Shown here one piece after another: positions 2,486 through 64,000 of a stretch of DNA of 64,000 nucleotides (position 1 is the stretch's first letter; each line of letters starts with the position of its first letter). The stretch lies in NCBI GenBank assembly GCA_024704765.1, contig JAKMXF010000302.1, positions 397,114 to 461,113 of the forward strand, written 5' to 3'. Both the position numbers and the translations under genes were made by a program. The notes beneath the pieces were generated by a model. That model had not been told where the DNA came from and made no database searches. It saw nothing but the letters and a program-made list of their open reading frames with translations. The DNA is from Oopsacas minuta. Lineage: Eukaryota > Animalia > Porifera.

Positions 2486-6002
<3,517 letters not shown>

Positions 6003-6238: not shown

Positions 6239-9200
6239 ATGGCAGATACTAAGTTCAAAGCTGAATATGCTCTAACAAACAGAAGTAATTGCAAGAAGTG
6301 TAAGGCAACTATAAACAAGGCGGAATTTAGGATAGCTAAACTTACTCCCAGTCCCTTTTCAGAGGGTGAATTACTAGCCCAGTGGCATCATCCTGCCTGT
6401 CTATTCCAAACATTCCAAAGAGTACGAGCTACAACTAAGATAATAGAAGAACCTGATGACGTAGATGGATATGGAAACTTGGAAAATGAAGATAAGAAGA
6501 GTTTACTTAAACTAATTGAATCAATTGAGGTAATTAATAATACATCATACAGGTAATTGTACGTACTTATTTATATTGATGTCGTTGTAGGACAGAATAA
6601 AAGTGAGGAAGACACAGTTAGCCAAATCACCAGGTGATAATTCTACAGTCACTACACCGAAGAAATCTCCAACAAAATTACCTTATACTACACGTAAGTA
6701 TTTACCTAAGATTATTAGATTTTAATTAAACGCATGTCTATAGCTACAAAACAAACTGGTAGTAGTCCCTGCAGCTCCAGAGATAATACTGATACACTTG
6801 GTTTTGAGGAATTCACAGATCTGTGTATCAAACTTGAGAGTAACTCTTCTCACATCGCTAAGAAGAATCTGATCCAAGAATACTTGTCAGCTCTACCAAA
6901 AGAGCATACAATACAAGCAGTACAAATGTTGTTACCAGCTCATGGCAAAGATAAATCAAGAATATACCATCTCAAGGTATAATATCATTATATCGTATTT
7001 CCTCGAATATTTATCTACTATGCACACCCCAATATGTATATAGAGCCGGCAGCTAATGAAATTATTCTCTGGTATATTCTCCTCTGATTTCGATAAGATG
7101 AATGAAATGACAGAACAGAATGGAGATGTGTCTGAGACAATTTGCTCTTTCTTTCTGACATCTAGCTCTGTTTCTCCAGCTGATTCGGCTTCTCTTTCTC
7201 TGACAGAGATTGACAAATGTCTAGAAGAAATGTCACAAGATGGAACTGAGAAACATCAATCTAAAGTTATACGAGGAATTCTCTCTGATCTAACAGCTGT
7301 TGAGCTTAAATACTTTGTTAGATTGATAAAGAAAGATTTGAAGACAGCTGCTGGAGTTAAACCAGTCATGGATGCTCTATCAAATGATGCATATGCTGCT
7401 TTCCAAGTTAGAATCATTCATAATTAATTGATATACTACATTTCTTTACGAATTTTCCCTAAGGCAAGTCAAGATATAGAAGACGTAGTAACGCGAGTCC
7501 TGAAGGCTAAAGCAAATTCAACTCCTGGTAAAATGAAAAAAGAGCTGAGTATTCGTACTAATGTTATGGTACCGATTAAGCCTATGCTTGCTGAGGCATG
7601 TAAATCTTACGCACATGCTTTCAAGAGATGTCCTAATGGATTCTATTCAGAGCTGAAGTATGATGGAGAGAGAGTACAGGTATAAATAAGAAATTATGTA
7701 ATTCTCAAATAAAATATGATAGAGATATTTACTAATGTATTCAGGTACACAAACAAGGCGATGAATTTAAGTTCTACGCTAGGAGCTTAAAGCCAGTTGC
7801 TGGCCATAAAGTCAATGAGTTTACAGAATACCTTCCTAAGGCCTGCCCAGCTGATTCAATAATATTAGACTGTGAAGTTCTGCTAATGGATCTGAAGACA
7901 AGCAAACCTCTTCCATTCGGTACATTAGGTGTACACAAAAAGAGCAAATTTCAGGTAAATTCTTATCATTACGTCATAAAAATTGTGTTATAATGTATTG
8001 CTACAGGATGCTACATGCTGTCTGTTCATTTTCGATATAATGTACTTAAACGGAACGAGTTTAGTAGAAAAGTCATTGAAAGAGCGTAGAAAGATTCTAC
8101 ACAAAGTTGTTACTGAGATACCTAATCGTATACAACTTAGTCAAGGAAAATTGATCGTAAAAGGAGAGAAGCATAAACTGGAAGAGATGATGAGTAATGT
8201 GATGAAACAAGGATTGGAGGGTCTAGTTATGAAAGGGGTGGAAGGGGTATATGAACCAGGTCAGTTGTATTAAAAATTTTAAAACAATTTATACAATCGT
8301 TCACAATTATGGATAATTTGTTAGGGAAGAGACACTGGTTGAAAATGAAGAAAGACTACCTTTCAGATGGAGCTATGGCTGATTCTGCAGACCTTGTTGT
8401 CCTGGGTGCTTATTACGGGACTGGTGTAAAGGGTGGCCTAATGTCTGTGTTTCTTATGGGAGTTCATGATACTGTAAATAATAACTGGTGTACAGTAGCG
8501 AAAGCAGGAAATGGTCTGGATGATAATGAAATACAAAAACTACAGACAAAGTTTGATATGATTAAAATAGGGAAAGATATGAGTAAGGTTCCATCATGGT
8601 TGTCATGTACTAAGACTGTAGTCCCTGATTTCGTGGTGAAAGATCCAAAGAACTCTCAAGTATGGGAGATAGTAGGAGCTGAATTCTCAGAGTCAAGTAC
8701 TCACACTGCAGATGGTATTTCTATTCGGTTTCCCAGAATAGCTAAGGTTAGAGATGATAAAGGTTGGAGGGATGCTACCGATCTACAGAGACTCAAGAAG
8801 CTGTATCAAATATCGAAAGAACACACAGATATTGGTATTCTATTCAGGTAATATAAGATCTATCGCAGTGTGGTTCCCAACCTTTTCACTCATGGACCAC
8901 AGGTTGGGGATCGCTAATCTATAGAATAGATTAATAGCCGAATTTACAAGAATTCATTGTATTTCTTATAGTCCAGACGAACAGTCGGATACAGAAATTG
9001 AAATACCAAAAGTAGGTTCAAAAAGAAAATCTCCCGCTACCAAGACAACGTCTCCTAAGGTAAAGAGAGTAAAGGAAGAAGAAACTAATTCTTTTGACAT
9101 AGTAGATCCACTACCTGATATATTCTCTGGTATAAAATTGTATATTTCAGGAAAATTACCTGTAGATGTTAGAAATAACCTGGAGAGATATATTATCGCT

Positions 9201-39518: not shown

Positions 39519-42500
39519 TTAGGGGGTAGAGGGAGAATATTTGATAAAGGCTTCGATTTGTCCAAGTCCCTCCCTCGTAATTGGTAGGTGGAATTCTTTT
39601 ATTGGCAAATGAGAGCACTAAAATGATATACAATATTAAGAAATTCATTGAATCAACTTGCTTTTGAGAGCATCATAAATATATTTACCTGATCTTTATG
39701 TGTCTTATTAGTATTCGTAGAACTAGTCGAGAGAGTAGTAAAGCGAGATGTATAGTTGTAGGCATTTCTACGCATAGTTTGAGTTATTTTGTATACATGC
39801 CCTTCTGTGGAGAATATGTAACGTTCTGATTTCTTGTTCAAAATATTGTCTTTATCGAATAACTAATAATTATAGTAGTGTTACGATGTTTTGATAAACA
39901 AAGGATTTTGTGTAGAACTCACCAAATAAAGGTATTTGGTTGTTTCGCTCAGAAAGAAACTCTCCATTCTATCTTCAATAGATTTATCAAGTACATTGTG
40001 AATGGTCGCATAACCACATCTAAATATCTGGATAAATATCCTAGCCAACAGATTCTATTAACAAATTATAGTTACCTTGTTTTAGCGAATTTCTGAATAT
40101 TATCAATGATATCTTTCCCAACATATAGATAAAATGGATTACGTGTTGCCTAGAAATTCTTAGGTTAAATTGACAATTTTTTGAGTTGCTACATCGTTCC
40201 CCTACTGCAGCGGTTCCCAACCTGGGATCCATGGACCCCTTGGTGGTCCACGAACGAGAGCAGGGGGTTCACAGAAAGTGGTAAAAGTGGTGGAAAGGGT
40301 TGGGAACTACTGCCCTACTGCATTTATTCTTACGTATTACAACATATAAATTGTATATACTTGGTATAGCATGTAAGTAGATTCAGCAAATTCAGGTCTG
40401 AGAGGAGAGAAGGGTATAGTAGGGGTAGCTGATTTCCAATCATACCGCTCTGGTAGCATATCATACTTCCTCCATAATGTGTAATAGAATGCATGAGAAC
40501 AGATAGCTTCTCTTAGATCACCAGATAGCACCTGCATTATATAGTATATTATATGGTGTATTGAATTCTATAGTATTGTATACCTGTAATGCTGGGAATG
40601 AAGCTGATAGAGCATCAACCCATGTATTAATCACTTTCCCACTGTTCATGTCTACGTTTGCAAAGAAAGGCGTCCATTCAATATCTGGTTTCCATGTCTG
40701 GCACGGTCGACTGTAATAATTAATATTAAACCCAATTTAAACAGATTTTAAATAATAGCCTTACTCACCCACGTTTAAGATATTTCATAACATTAGCGTA
40801 TTGTTCAGTAAAACTATTCAAGTCCTTGTGATTTCCGAACAAAATATAACTCTACTTAAAAATATAAAATTAAATTAAGAACAGACAAAACAATAACGAA
40901 CAAACTTTGAAAATGTACTCGTAAAGTGAGTCTATCCCTGCTCCTAATCCTGTCATTTGATCTGTCCATAATCCAGACTGTACATCTATTGTGTTCCCTA
41001 ATAATTGTTTGAGTAAATTACATATTTGGTGCAATAACAAGATTATTCTAACTTAACATACCGACGAGTCCAGTTACTTGTGATCTTAAATCTAAAATTA
41101 TTTCCATTGCTTTTCTGGCTAATCTTTCATACTTGACGTCACCTACTAATCGAGAAAGGATACCGAACTCAATCAGGAGGGTGCCAGCCCCAGCAGCACA
41201 GGTAGTATTCACACGATACACTGGTTTTGATCCGTTTAGATTCACCTATAAATTATTGTCAAAAGTAAGAAAAACGTCCATATTTCAGGATAAACCAATA
41301 ATTCATTAATCTTTCTGGAGAGTATTTCGGCTCCAGACTTATCTCTAAAGATAATCAGTGGTAGAGACATGCGATAGTGGGGTTTATATGTTAATCTACT
41401 CAAATTACAATGGGATATTTATTACGTTTCCAAGAGAATCAGCAATATGCAAGTAAATAAGAGGCAGTCATTATATCAGAATACAACTAATAGACTACTT
41501 TTGAAGAGACAAAATAGCTAGAAATATGTGAATTAAAACAAGCTTCTTAAAGGATATATTTATACCCGTGGGTGAGGAAGTCCACTGAAGCTATTGTCAA
41601 AAGCTGGTAGTAGTTTATCAGCGAGTTGCTGTGAGAGGATTAGGAGTTCTCCTGAGTAGCCAGAAGGCCGCAAATCTCCAAAATCCTTCTCTTGATCTTC
41701 AATCAGCAAATGGGAGGAGAGCAGTGCCCCGAGAACTCTGGAATTAAGTAAGATAATATATTAGTTAGTTTCACTCAATTAATTAATAATTAAGAGATAT
41801 TACCTAATTGAAGCTTCAAATACTTGTACTGTTACATTGTGACTAAATGATACTGTGTTAATTACTCTATTTATAGCATCTTTGAATTCTGAAGTATTCC
41901 CCAATATCTGTAAACATTACATTATATTGTTTAAATATTAAAATTGGTTAAATGATATGACACAAGGGAAAATGGACTTACTGCTAGCATATCTAGTGAA
42001 TCCAGTAGAGATAATGAGTAGTTCCCAAGAACATCGTTAATGTTAATATTGTTCCTATAATTGATTTAGATGGTGTTACAGTGTATAGTTTAGTACATTG
42101 TAGGAATGCCAATTTTTCAACGATAAGAATAAATTTACAGGGTGGGTTAATAGATATCAAGATACTTTATTGATTTATTGAATTAAAGAAAAGTAGCATA
42201 CGTACATTTTCGGGTGAACATATTGATTTCAAAATAATAAAGACGAATACAGTCAACTCCCCGTTATACCCAACTCTAATGAGCACACCTGCCAATTCAA
42301 TAACAACTAAATGATCAGTCATCCAATATCCACTGTATGCTGGATAACTTTGCAATGGGAACAAAATAGAAATATATATATTACTCCTCAATTTCCTGAT
42401 CTTAAGACTTCCTTGTTATTAAACTCTGGACTTGAATGAAGTAAGTTATTAGACAACAAATACCGCATTCTTTCTCATTTTACTGACTCACATAATAGGA

Positions 42501-48500: not shown

Positions 48501-49404
48501 TATGTATTGCAGCCTGTTGTGTTGCTAGAATGGTTAGGAATTTTCTCTCTTTTCCTGTATCTGCTAACACATTGGATAGGAGTAAGAGCCCAATGGGTAT
48601 TCGCTAGTATTTCATTCACTCTGAATACTCTCAGATTATTCAAATATTTTACTTACTCTGTGTATCTTGGTCCTTATGCTAGTACTCTTTACTTAGCTTT
48701 GACTCGCGATATTCCACGATTTCTGGTTGTATTCGCACTTTTACTTGTAACATTCACTGGAGGATTCAGTCTTGCGATTGTACCGGTTAATAACACTACT
48801 TGTTCTACTTACGAAGATCAAGCATTCTGCAACGCTTCCCAAATATTTTTAAGTGGAATTCGTGTGCTATTGCATGGAAATATATTCCAAGATGCAAACT
48901 TCATCCAATTCCTAGGATTCTATCCTAGCTTGATATACTCAATCTTTATTATACTCATAGTTGTGTTTCTAATCAATTTCCTCGTGGCTCAATTCTGCAC
49001 AACATATTTCAACAATCTTCCAAGTGAAAAATGCTACAAACTTAAAATAGCTACTGAATTTGAAAATACATCATTATCCTATCTCGTGTTAGGGAAAATT
49101 ATTTGTGTATTAACAGCTGTAGTCAAGGCAAAAGTTGCTCAAGAATATTGGAAGAAAATACGACTCGATAAAGGTAAGTATTTTACAAAAATTATCTCGA
49201 TTCTTGGAAAAAGGTTTAAATATTTCTATGTTTTTAGAAACTCTCCAATTGGATAAAATCTCCACTGAGATGTCAGAACTAAAACAACAATTTCATAAAA
49301 ATTTACATATCAATAGAACTACACATGATTATAAAAACTTTACAATTGATGCGAGACAGAACAGAGAATCTCTCATGCAGGAAGATAAATGGCTCTCACA
49401 GTAA
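45520..49404 (+). CDS. Ankyrin-repeat TRP-type cation channel (TRPA-like), multi-exon gene span
   Basis: Many ankyrin repeats (GYTGLHWAA, GGTPLMKAA, TPLHIAA) followed by a multi-TM region with an S6-like LINFLVAQFCTTY. The final intron 49174-49237 joins in frame. Confidence 0.78.
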
Positions 49405-49564
49405 CCCAATGGTTTGTATTAGTAATTATATTATCATTATTTGCTTTCTACTTGTTTAACCTCTGTCTGCATTTCAAGAATATTTTGTAGTGTTTGTGCA
49501 TTCATAATTTTAAAATGATACTCAAGGATTATTAATTTATAATATGTGATGCCATAACGGGGGA

Positions 49565-52069
49565 TTAATTTTGAAACTTAAGAGGAAGGTTAGGGCCAAC
49601 CCTCTCAGAAGGATTGGGGTGCAGTTTGAGGACAGCTCCTGGGTTTGGATAAGGTCTCATCTGAAAAAGGGGACCACTGGCTGTCTCATCTGCTGCTCCG
49701 CCTCTCCCTTGTCCTTTTGTGGGAAGTCCAGTAGACCAAGATCCTCTAAATAACAAATATCCGAGGTTATTACACTAGGGAATATAAGCCAATCACTAAC
49801 CGTGGTATATCTGAATAAGATGAGGGATCCATTGGATCTATTTCATCATCATCCTCTCTGTGTTCTACAGTTAATTAAAATAATATAACATTTATTTAAG
49901 TGAAGAATCGGGTAAACATACTCTTTCTGTCTGCTCTATCATATGGTCTGTGTCTGTCTTTGTGTTTAGATTTACTCTATGGATATATACTGTTAGTAAT
50001 TATGCCAAGTAATATTCAAATCCTGCAGGAACAGTAGAACGTCCCTTCAAAACTGCAAAAATGAAATTAAACCGCATGAATAATTATCATATGAGATCAT
50101 AATTTGCTATCTAAGATTCACTCAATCTAGTACACCAACAAGTAAATATTATCACAAAGATTTTTTCAATAAGAAAGCATCCGAAGGATCAATACGCTTA
50201 TAGTAAGAGGGAACAGTTTCTATAATCTTAAATCCAAACCGTTCGTAGAACTCTATTGCTTCTTTATTATTGGTTTGAACATGAAGGGCAATTTCGTGGA
50301 TTCTCTTTCCCTCACAGTAAGATAAGAGATGCTCTAGAAGCTTTGTTGCAACTCCTAATCTCCTATAAGCACCAAGAACAGCTAGAGTCATTATATACAG
50401 TCTGTTGTTATCCTTGGTTTGATCGATCTTAGCACATACACCACCAACAACAATGTCTTTGAAATACGCGAATTTCGCTAGTTCTCCTAAGTCAGGCACA
50501 CCCTTATAGAAGTTCTCCTGATAGCTGAGAGGGAGAGCAGCTGCATTAATTATTTTCAGTTGTTTTAAGTTGTGCTGGGTTATCTCTCCGAGCTCAATCA
50601 AGTCTTTGAAGTTAGCTTTGTATTCATCATATGTAGCCATCTCGTATTAGCTAGTGCTAAATGTACCAGATACATTGTAAGTTAAGTTTGAAAAGGTTGG
50701 GAACCACTACTATTGATATCGCCACGTTAACGAGGTTCCATTGTATACTAATTCCAACAATTTGACATAATTATTGCTCTTAGACAAGGATGATCAATTA
50801 ATTTGTATTTTCAGCAAACAGTGACAAAAGTGTATTATACAACAATTCCATGATGTTATTAAAAAAGTGAATGGTCATGGCTCATGGGACATAATAAATG
50901 TAGTGTAGCCAATTATTTAGAACATATATCTCAAAATACTAAATATACTCATTGAGTCATTTTGTAGATATTTAATAATCTTCTTAGCAGAAAGTTGATA
51001 AAATACTAATTATGTTATTCAAGAACTTTAACCTCCTTATTGCATGCAGTAGGCCACCTGTCAACAAGATTAACTTACAAATCTATCTGGATGATTTCTA
51101 TGCTGTGATTTATCTTTGTGATTACTCTCGGGATGTTGGTCCTGTATCTGGTCTGGTGCTATTAGATAAATCCAAATAATTCTGTGCTGATATAAAATGT
51201 ATTACTAACTAGAAGTAAGCAATATAATAGATTACCCGTTATTTCATCAGGCGTGGGAGGTTCCCATTGTACGAGATCTGTGTCAGTATTCCAATAGTAA
51301 GGATAACCTCTGTACATTGATAATCAGTAGATTTTGTAAGATGTAGAATAGGTACTATAACCAAAGTTCATTCAGAAAATGCATTAACCCGTGGATTTTC
51401 GTATTTTTGGAGCATAATATAACTGATTACGTATTATCCGTGCACTTATAGAAAATAAGTAAGTAAACTTTTGCTGGGATATAAGATAATTTTGAAACCT
51501 CCTATTTCACGTTCCTAGCAAATGAAACCAGTCTCATTTCAGATATAAATTAAATCACGTACACTTATACGCACATACAATAATCTGAATGGTAATTAAT
51601 TCTTACGTGTTCTCGTCGATAACTTCTTCCCAGTTTGCTGGCAACGTAGACCGATCAAAGTCAACTCCCTAATAATCCATAAATACATAATTGCATGTGA
51701 TTCAACCACTTAATTGTCTAGCGATACAATATCTTCGTGAAAAATCACTAAATCATTAGATTTAAGATAATTAATATATATTCGTAAAATAACGATAATA
51801 AAAGAATAACATACCTTGTCACTAATCAATTTAGTATCTGTTTTACCAGTATCTGTAATAGAATTGAAAATTGAAGACAAATAATTCATTAGAAATAGTA
51901 TAGCGCAGCAGTTCCAAACCTATTTCACCCGTGGACTCCCTCCCATAGACAACAATACAAATTTTTACAGGACCAGTTAGGGAACAGCTGTTCTAGCTTA
52001 AAAAGTACCTTGAGATGAAAGCAAACCTCTTTTAGCGAGTCTAGCCTTCATAGCAGGAGTCAGTGACAT
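49565..52069 (-). CDS. PQBP1: Polyglutamine-binding protein 1 (WW domain), multi-exon gene span, not called as a gene by the ORF track
   Basis: Start [17 protein letters not shown]; WW domain [13 protein letters not shown]|[18 protein letters not shown]; C-terminal [16 protein letters not shown]|[25 protein letters not shown]. Splice phases are compatible. Confidence 0.92.
50152..50640 (-). CDS. NAA50: N-alpha-acetyltransferase 50 (NatE), intronless, nested in a PQBP1 intron on the same strand
   Basis: [61 protein letters not shown]. Confidence 0.93.
   Translation of the reverse strand: MATYDEYKANFKDLIELGEITQHNLKQLKIINAAALPLSYQENFYKGVPDLGELAKFAYFKDIVVGGVCAKIDQTKDNNRLYIMTLAVLGAYRRLGVATKLLEHLLSYCEGKRIHEIALHVQTNNKEAIEFYERFGFKIIETVPSYYKRIDPSDAFLLKKSL
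50695..50709. mobile_element. Solo hAT TIR, 55 nt upstream of the NAA50 ATG
   Basis: GGTTGGGAACCACTA matches the family TIR at 14/15 positions; no partner TIR or TSD found. Confidence 0.5.
51906..51990. mobile_element. Degenerate hAT MITE in PQBP1 intron 1
   Basis: CAGCAGTTCCAAACC..TTCACCCGTGGACTCC..GTTAGGGAACAGCTG. Flanks GTATAGCG and TTCTAGCT match at 5/8 with central TA. Confidence 0.6.
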
Positions 52070-52350
52070 GTTCAAACGTATAGAATAAGGAGAATATACA
52101 ATAGCTTATACAAAAATTAGAGTAACAATATACACTTAGAAATATTTAACAATAAAAATTAGTTATACAAACACACATACAAGTATTACTCAAGTAACAA
52201 TAAGAAATTGGACTTGGGAATATAATTTTATAAATAAAGTTCTACAATTTCGTTAACGAGGCATTATTACAAGTGAAGTTAGTGAAAAAAAAATGAAAGA
52301 GTATAAATTTTGGAGGATATAAAAGAGATTAAGTTGATAGAGTGGGAGTA

Positions 52351-53999
<1,649 letters not shown>

Positions 54000-63502: not shown

Positions 63503-64000
63503 CAGTGGTTCCCAACCCTTGCCACCCCAAGACCCCATTCAGCCATGGAGCTAAGTAGGTGGCCCCACACATTGAACATAAATTACACAATTGTAAATTA
63601 TCAACTCATTATTTTGGCATGTAATTTATAATATATGAAAATACTCTACCATTATGGAAATTTGAAATATCAGGTTTGCTTGTGCTTTTTCAGGACAAGC
63701 TCTTTAATTTTTGGTTTTGTAGTAGAAATAGCACATCTCAAATCATCTTCTACTTGTAAACGATTGCGTTTCTTTGTTTTAATAGTCATCAAGGTAGAAA
63801 AAGCATTTTCACATAAATATGTTGTCCGGAATGGGATCAGAGTGCGTAATGCAGATTCTGAAATAAGGGGATACATCTCAATTAGTGACAGCCAAAATTC
63901 GTTTAAGGGTATTGTTTGATATCTGTTCTTTGCTAAACTATCGTTTAACATCTCAATAAATTCCTCTTGAAATATCTCAGGTACATCTTCAACATTCATT
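63503..64000 (-). mobile_element. 3' end of a hAT (Buster/Charlie-type) transposon; transposase C-terminus at 63670-63999, truncated by the window edge
   Basis: TIR CAGTGGTTCCCAACC at 63503 preceded by TCATAAGG (NNNTANNN). Dimerisation-domain motif FW...YPLIS..AL..LIPFRTTYLCENAFSTL..IKTKKRNRL. Confidence 0.9.

Follow-up and report, generated by a model that had tools for sequence, protein, structure and literature searches.

A same-strand NAA50 gene inside a spliced PQBP1 intron of a glass sponge takes a 5′ piece not encoded nearby

Glass sponges commonly carry genes within the introns of other genes. The genome of A. vastus (Francis et al. 2023) holds 2432 nested genes (12.4%), many of them conserved with Oopsacas minuta; the nested single-exon gene glassin is one example, and the public O. 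minuta annotation contains 83 nested genes (PMC10282587). Here we describe one such pair in a 64,000-nt stretch of O. minuta DNA (contig JAKMXF010000302.1; the whole stretch is called the window, positions are numbered within it, and features lie on its minus strand unless stated otherwise). An intronless NAA50 gene, the guest, lies wholly within intron 5 of PQBP1, the host, and on the host strand. A first inspection of the letters, the sequence-only reading, had suggested that such an arrangement may be typical of the lineage, which agrees with the abundance of nested genes in glass sponges (PMC10282587). The pair resembles the A. vastus nests in being a single-exon guest wholly inside a host intron of a small, compact hexactinellid genome, and it differs in that NAA50-in-PQBP1 is not named in the searched passages of that paper. 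Nesting as such is a known and frequent feature of glass sponges; what this locus adds to the A. vastus survey, for one pair, is a splice across the guest, a leader-bearing guest acceptor and the deep conservation of two housekeeping genes across six lineages.

Two systems outside sponges offer further comparisons. In Drosophila melanogaster, 29% of nested genes lie on the strand of their host and 72.5% of those are single-exon, a bias attributed to selection against mis-splicing (Lee and Chang 2013, PMC3814207). Fly guests of this kind share strand and single exon with ours but are typically young, fast-evolving and testis-biased (PMC3814207), whereas NAA50, apparently present in one copy, encodes a conserved housekeeping enzyme, is part of an ancient pair and has a functional acceptor. 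The SL2 operons of nematodes also have co-oriented genes, and there too the acceptor that receives the leader closely precedes the start codon of the downstream gene. There, however, the downstream gene follows the upstream 3′ end, whereas here the guest is intronic and the host exons have still to be joined; no polycistronic precursor was seen here, and operons are unreported in hexactinellids (PMC7986045).

The closest described mechanism is found in glass sponges themselves, which trans-splice a leader of ~37 nt, as reported for A. vastus (PMC10282587), and spliced-leader trans-splicing in hexactinellids is also covered in PMC7986045. Our locus has the same unpaired acceptor shortly before the start codon, receiving a 5′ piece of non-local origin, and differs in that only the 10–12 terminal letters of that piece are visible, on one gene. 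Douris et al. reportedly described spliced-leader trans-splicing in Hexactinellida in 2010.

Our reading of the locus, to which we give an even chance, is that of a glass-sponge host–guest pair in which PQBP1 is spliced across its guest and NAA50 would be leader-trans-spliced from a start of its own within the intron. The stretch is present in four sequencing runs (X1 to X4), all from one sample and one study. None of them is recorded as RNA, and the class of X4 was assigned from its behaviour: its contigs skip canonical introns, and we call it RNA-like. Runs X1 to X3 are DNA-like, with collinear contigs whose overhangs are Nextera adapter sequence. The Logan contigs used here cannot show where an RNA starts or ends, and their summed depth cannot rank the expression of the two genes.

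From start to stop codon PQBP1 occupies 52069 to 49565, in eight exons: 52069-52009, 51852-51815 (12 aa), 51668-51607 (with the first Trp of a putative WW domain, in LPANWEEV), 51309-51236 (the second half of that domain), 51158-51079, 49976-49922, 49864-49801 and 49745-49565 (with the C-terminal U5-15kD-binding peptide). The exons total 615 nt in frame, and all seven introns are GT..AG. The gene was searched exon by exon against profiles and structures. Exon 8 matched the PQBP1 C-terminal peptide structures 4bwq, 4bws and 4cdo (E 2e-8 to 3e-7; 2e-8 for 4bwq), of which 4bwq is the human PQBP1 peptide crystallised with U5-15kD; this U5-15kD/TXNL4A-binding peptide reads GPLFQQRPYPSPGAVL in human. 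Exon 4 alone matched positions 14-31 of the 31 in the Pfam WW profile (E 1.1e-4), with 22.6 bits falling short of the 26.9 cut-off because this exon would carry no more than half of the domain. Exons 5 to 7 form the polar, charged stretch typical of PQBP1, with HREDDDE in exon 7, as judged by eye.

Intron 5 (51078-49977) is 1102 bp long and in phase 0, exons 1 to 5 totalling 315 nt, and the remaining six introns measure 55–297 bp. Its donor, GTAAGT at 51078-51073, follows ..HPDRF, and its acceptor AG at 49978-49977 precedes SKSKHKDR. A perfect TACTAAC branch-point consensus at 49998-49992, the last base of which is 14 nt upstream of the acceptor AG, probably serves this acceptor, to judge from the consensus. 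An X4 joint (49976 to 51079) connects exon 5 to exon 6, skipping 1102 letters with CT..AC ends on the plus strand; with 30 letters on its shorter side, its placement is unambiguous. Further X4 joints lie at 49745/49801, 51158/51236 and 51309/51607, and loose ends of X4 contigs at 49864, 49922, 51670 and 51854 continue into the adjoining PQBP1 exons, so that every one of the seven introns has RNA-like support (joints for introns 3, 4, 5 and 7; loose ends for 1, 2 and 6). One unspliced X4 contig of 433 nt (50676-51108) runs from exon 5 into intron 5 and represents unspliced host RNA, which comes as close as 20 nt to the guest acceptor. At 50860, in a homopolymer of intron 5, X3 and part of X2 have one extra A, due either to an error in the reads or the assembly or to a heterozygous indel. 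The sequence-only reading had proposed this anatomy, with an intronless guest on the host strand of a phase-0 intron, from the same coordinates and splice sites, which we confirmed. It had also asked whether the two PQBP1 exon groups are spliced together and whether NAA50 might be silent or an assembly artefact; the exon groups are joined across the guest by the X4 joint.

The NAA50 open reading frame (ORF), 50640-50152 with its stop codon, encodes 162 aa and, as the earlier inspection had it, is complete, with no internal stop. It matched the Pfam Acetyltransf_1 (GNAT) profile (E 1.4e-19, 70.9 bits, cut-off 20.7). The best structure matches were human NAA50 (6wf3, 3tfy), with E 2e-52 over 149 aligned aa (residues 14-162), followed by Arabidopsis NAA50 (E 6e-38); NAA10 reached ~1e-11, and NAA50 was far ahead of NAA10, NAA20, NAA30 and NAA60. 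The acetyl-CoA motif R/Q-x-x-G-x-G/A is kept (RRLGVA, against RRLGIG in human), as are the Tyr and His positions in the alignment to human (LYIMTL in both, LHVQ in both); in the human enzyme these are Tyr73 and His112, which we take to be its catalytic bases. We read the guest ORF as a functional NAA50 gene separate from its host, with predicted N-terminal acetyltransferase activity and NatA binding. X4 contigs cover the gene (50161-50658) and DNA contigs of X1 to X3 cross it, and NAA50 is neither silent nor an artefact of assembly. The summed depth of the X4 contigs on NAA50 is several-fold that of the contigs on PQBP1 exons, a weak measure that cannot rank the genes. No second NAA50 from O. 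minuta was present among 130 homologues (the earlier inspection had proposed to look for an intron-containing paralogue), and no product identical to the ORF is on record in public assemblies. We conclude that the guest is probably the only NAA50 copy and probably missing from the public annotation, in line with the just 83 nested genes of that annotation (PMC10282587).

The 5′ end of the guest (50661 to 50641) consists of a TTTAG acceptor at 50661-50657 and a 16-nt 5′ untranslated region (UTR) at 50656-50641; an AG at 50642-50641 stands directly before the ATG. One X4 contig on NAA50 departs from the genome at 50658, where ten foreign letters follow. Read as minus-strand RNA, the guest 5′ end is AAAAACTTAC, AG, then CACTAGCTAATACGAG ATG, and the AG is common to leader and genome, so the junction falls on the TTTAG/C acceptor. 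Both AGs had been pointed out by the sequence-only reading, and the loose end at 50658 shows TTTAG to be in use. The last 10–12 letters of the leader are visible, on NAA50 alone. Its 9-, 10- and 11-mers have no match on either strand of the window, whose upstream end is 13.4 kb from the guest, and its 12-mer with one mismatch has one chance-level match in the window, 40 kb downstream. Contigs of X1 to X3 are collinear through 50658, the DNA running straight across this point, so the loose end does not stem from a structural allele. A chimeric PQBP1–NAA50 mRNA, which the earlier inspection had proposed to look for, was rejected as well: no PQBP1 exon ends in the letters of the leader, and no such joint occurs among the X4 joints listed. 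In five of the six lineages compared below, a TAG/C acceptor is kept 15–21 nt before the ATG, the sequence further upstream being unalignable. We conclude that the TTTAG upstream of NAA50 is a used acceptor joined to a non-local 5′ piece, and that the ten foreign letters are likely to be the 3′ end of the glass-sponge spliced leader.

Conservation was assessed in five relatives (ENA analyses ERZ25071281, ERZ25766962, ERZ25072740, ERZ25072730 and ERZ20067936), which provided seven loci (L001 to L007) including two haplotype pairs, hence six lineages counting the window. The five closest NAA50 proteins are 76–85% identical to the guest, and the next best among the 130 homologues reaches 56%. In all five relatives and all seven loci NAA50 is intronless and sits in the same PQBP1 intron, and the synteny that the earlier inspection had proposed to check holds throughout. 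In six of the seven loci, per-exon tblastn placed PQBP1 exons 1 and 3–5 ahead of NAA50 and exons 6–8 behind it, all in one orientation. Exons 1 and 3 of L004 fall outside the fetched stretch because of a transposon, and in L007 exon 5 gave no tblastn match and its donor is present. The 12-aa exon 2 gave no clear tblastn match in any of the seven loci. The host donor (GTAAGT or GTGAGT) and acceptor are at the same codon position in every lineage. Between lineages, the synonymous divergence (dS) of NAA50 runs from 1.3 to unmeasurable, and the ratio of nonsynonymous to synonymous divergence (dN/dS) from 0.03 to 0.14. Because silent sites are saturated and dN/dS is this low, the nest is an ancient one and the guest is strongly constrained by purifying selection.

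Gene order is also kept in all relatives: HPD, then PQBP1 with NAA50 inside, then a convergent ankyrin-repeat channel gene. HPD (4-hydroxyphenylpyruvate dioxygenase-like, glyoxalase-fold) has its 3′ end at 52351-52560 and extends upstream on the minus strand, ~280 nt before the PQBP1 start codon; its contig depth is the highest in run X4. On the other side, PQBP1 and the channel gene, which is on the plus strand, end within ~300 nt of each other (49054-49654), and RNA-like contigs of the one side overlap those of the other at 49372-49401. The channel gene has a GT..AG intron at 49172-49235, backed by an X4 joint at 49171/49236.

One part of intron 5 can be aligned between lineages: a 25-nt element, GGTTAAAGTTCTTGAATAACATAAT, at 51033-51009, 45 nt downstream of the host donor. 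It lies 37–47 nt after the exon-5 donor in six of six lineages (L001 5411-5428, L002 5579-5596, L003 5411-5428, L004 342-359, L005 5344-5361, L006 5366-5383, L007 5739-5756). The pattern derived from it is unique in the window and occurs once per relative locus; a general promoter motif was therefore ruled out, the pattern being unique to intron 5. No consensus RNA structure was predicted at the element, and Rfam gave no match at E<=1 across 49400-52400, element and intron included, which led us to reject a small RNA encoded in the intron. The element stays with the donor, not with the guest, as is seen in L004, where a transposon separates it from NAA50. This 5063-bp insertion in the host intron (L004 528-5590, against L003 near 5596), carried by one haplotype of a relative, has perfect 41-bp terminal inverted repeats. 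Its two minus-strand ORFs (452 and 178 aa) have no Pfam match, and one of them has an integrase-like GYTPFYLMFGRE stretch, judged by eye. The conserved element may be a splicing enhancer for a long intron, or it may belong to a start region of the guest.

Nearer to the guest lies a remnant of another kind, a solo terminal repeat of a dispersed family resembling miniature inverted-repeat transposable elements (50711 to 50691, ..TAGTGGTTCCCAACCTTTT). Its motif, AGTGGTTCCCAACCTTTT, at 50708-50691 (~50–70 nt upstream of the NAA50 ATG), is found five times in the window against 0.07 expected, and the core six times (0.07–0.3 expected across versions of the motif). Other copies of this CAGTGGTTCCCAACC.. 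family are at 5210-5227, 8869-8886, 40212-40311 and 63504-63521, and the one at 40212-40308, with two arms separated by ~100 bp, has the look of a miniature inverted-repeat element. The motif at 50708-50691 is a real dispersed terminal repeat without an inverted partner nearby, much as the sequence-only reading had described it; the hAT label given there is tentative, with a possible likeness to the ends of vertebrate hAT-Charlie elements, and the window contains no autonomous copy. The remnant is absent from the matching place in the relatives.

Two smaller features of the intron deserve mention. A 16-nt complementarity (88%) links 50675-50690, which is 18 nt before the guest acceptor, with 51065-51080 in the exon-5 donor region. 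The host donor could pair in RNA with the guest outron (an outron being a stretch upstream of an acceptor without a usable cis donor), or the match may be chance in AT-rich sequence. The palindromic CTCGTTAACG occurs just twice in the 64 kb, at 50725-50734 and 52251-52260, that is, 85–94 nt before the NAA50 ATG and 182–191 nt before the PQBP1 ATG; two copies are no more than chance would give, and the placement before both genes is suggestive of a possible start-region motif. The alignments of the relatives contain no recognisable conserved promoter block adjoining the guest.

Under the reading we favour, the polymerase would pass through the guest, and intron 5 would be removed as one unit, the strong GTAAGT donor of exon 5 pairing with the exon-6 acceptor with the help of the perfect TACTAAC, the best branch-point consensus in the region. 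The primary transcript of the guest would start inside the intron, downstream of the exon-5 donor, giving a precursor with an outron. A leader encoded elsewhere, its 3′ end reading ..AAAAACTTACAG, would then be spliced onto TTTAG, 16 nt before the ATG, to make the 5′ end of the NAA50 mRNA. The guest 3′ end would be formed in the 173 nt that precede the host acceptor, with host polymerases reading through. Unless the guest RNA continues into exon 6, this spacer between guest stop codon and host acceptor (50151 to 49979) has to accommodate the 3′ UTR and poly(A) site of the guest. The spacing from stop to acceptor, 175 nt in the window, is 142–166 nt in four relative lineages; L007 has 356 nt. 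No conserved block above shuffles follows the stop codon. Within the spacer the summed depth of X4 contigs falls from ~5000 to 455, a weak hint, being contig depth.

The choice of an intronic start draws on a rule worked out in nematodes: Conrad and Blumenthal are said to have shown in C. elegans that a donor placed upstream turns a trans-spliced gene into a cis-spliced one (the outron rule). A start inside the intron is favoured because the acceptor bears a foreign leader, and an upstream cis donor would give cis-splicing under this rule. On our analysis, a guest start of its own, which appears about evenly poised, would be favoured over release from the host transcript, which seems improbable. 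If exon 5 were cis-spliced to the guest acceptor, the product would be predicted to read CAC TAG, an immediate stop, and PQBP1 would be truncated. Several observations weigh against the favoured reading. The 173-nt spacer contains no AATAAA, neither a poly(A) signal nor a 3′ end came to light, and the same holds for a promoter or transcription start. The unspliced contig at 50676-51108 shows that host-derived precursors reach near the guest acceptor, and the contig depth figures cannot rank PQBP1 against NAA50. The leader itself rests on one contig with ten unplaced letters, from a run not recorded as RNA, and its letters are seen on NAA50 alone; no gene for a spliced-leader RNA turned up, though no genome-wide search was made.

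Alternatively, NAA50 might be a cistron embedded in the intron, without a promoter and cut out of the PQBP1 pre-mRNA by leader trans-splicing, each transcript then yielding either PQBP1 or NAA50 mRNA and never both. In favour of this, the two genes are on one strand, the guest acceptor takes a foreign leader, unspliced host RNA extends at least to 50676 (20 nt from that acceptor), and a recognisable conserved promoter block next to the guest is lacking. The 5-kb transposon between exon-5 donor and guest is tolerated in one relative haplotype, as if the upstream sequence were discarded. This explanation nevertheless strikes us as unlikely. An upstream exon-5 donor would, by the outron rule, predict cis-splicing to the guest acceptor, yet no chimera of exon 5 and guest is found among the joints listed; the depth of NAA50 contigs is several-fold above that of PQBP1 exons, a weak measure; and hexactinellid operons have not been reported (PMC7986045). 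The mutually exclusive or intron-derived mRNA that the sequence-only reading had put forward found no RNA evidence, and the leader matches no PQBP1 exon end. We are similarly doubtful that one transcription unit gives rise to both housekeeping mRNAs, with the choice between cis- and trans-splicing perhaps tuned by the conserved element and the 16-nt complementarity.

Should the foreign letters have a source other than a spliced leader, they might be the end of a non-coding first exon of NAA50, cis-spliced from more than 13 kb upstream, beyond the window, or from an unassembled stretch. Just ten letters are known, on one gene, which leaves room for such an exon, but neither strand of the window contains them, the genes upstream of PQBP1, HPD among them, are unrelated and packed, and among introns of 55–1102 bp one of 13 kb or more would be exceptional; we regard this source as very unlikely. 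It is just as hard to believe that the loose end is an artefact of contig or library and that NAA50 starts conventionally near its ATG, unspliced. The overhang is short and belongs to a single contig, of a kind that cannot show RNA ends; the break, however, falls exactly on a TTTAG/C acceptor consensus conserved in relatives, and the overhang, unlike the other loose ends listed, is not adapter sequence.

How NAA50 came to lie in PQBP1 is a separate question of history. In the demosponge Dysidea avara, the NAA50 model spans 277 kb, and the gene table lists no WW-domain host around it; because of that span, D. avara NAA50 has introns. In human, NAA50 and PQBP1 are on different chromosomes. Because no such host is listed around the D. 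avara gene and the human genes are apart, the nest looks specific to glass sponges. In an early glass sponge, a retrocopy of NAA50 may have entered the PQBP1 intron and taken the place of an intron-bearing parent, an origin compatible with any expression mechanism and one that we find plausible, if somewhat short of an even chance. NAA50 is intronless in the window and in all relatives, the D. avara gene bears introns and is not listed inside a WW-domain gene, and the 130 homologues include no second O. minuta copy. Against this, the stop codon is followed by neither a poly(A) tract nor a target-site duplication, so that of the marks of a retrogene intronlessness is the one found, although an old retrocopy would have lost the other two. 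Intronlessness is itself weak evidence, 9872 of 16340 O. minuta genes being single-exon (PMC10282587).

The locus is a same-strand nest that has outlasted silent-site saturation and joins two genes of essential type, of which PQBP1 is a splicing factor. The public annotation probably lacks NAA50, a point that bears on claims of gene loss in glass sponges. In a lineage in which about one gene in eight is nested and which has spliced leaders (PMC10282587), the pair offers, with its 1.1 kb, strong host signal and mapped guest acceptor, a small test case for asking whether trans-splicing is what allows a guest to occupy the strand of its host. If it were true and general, the reading of NAA50 as a cistron within the host intron would explain how thousands of same-strand nested genes are tolerated.

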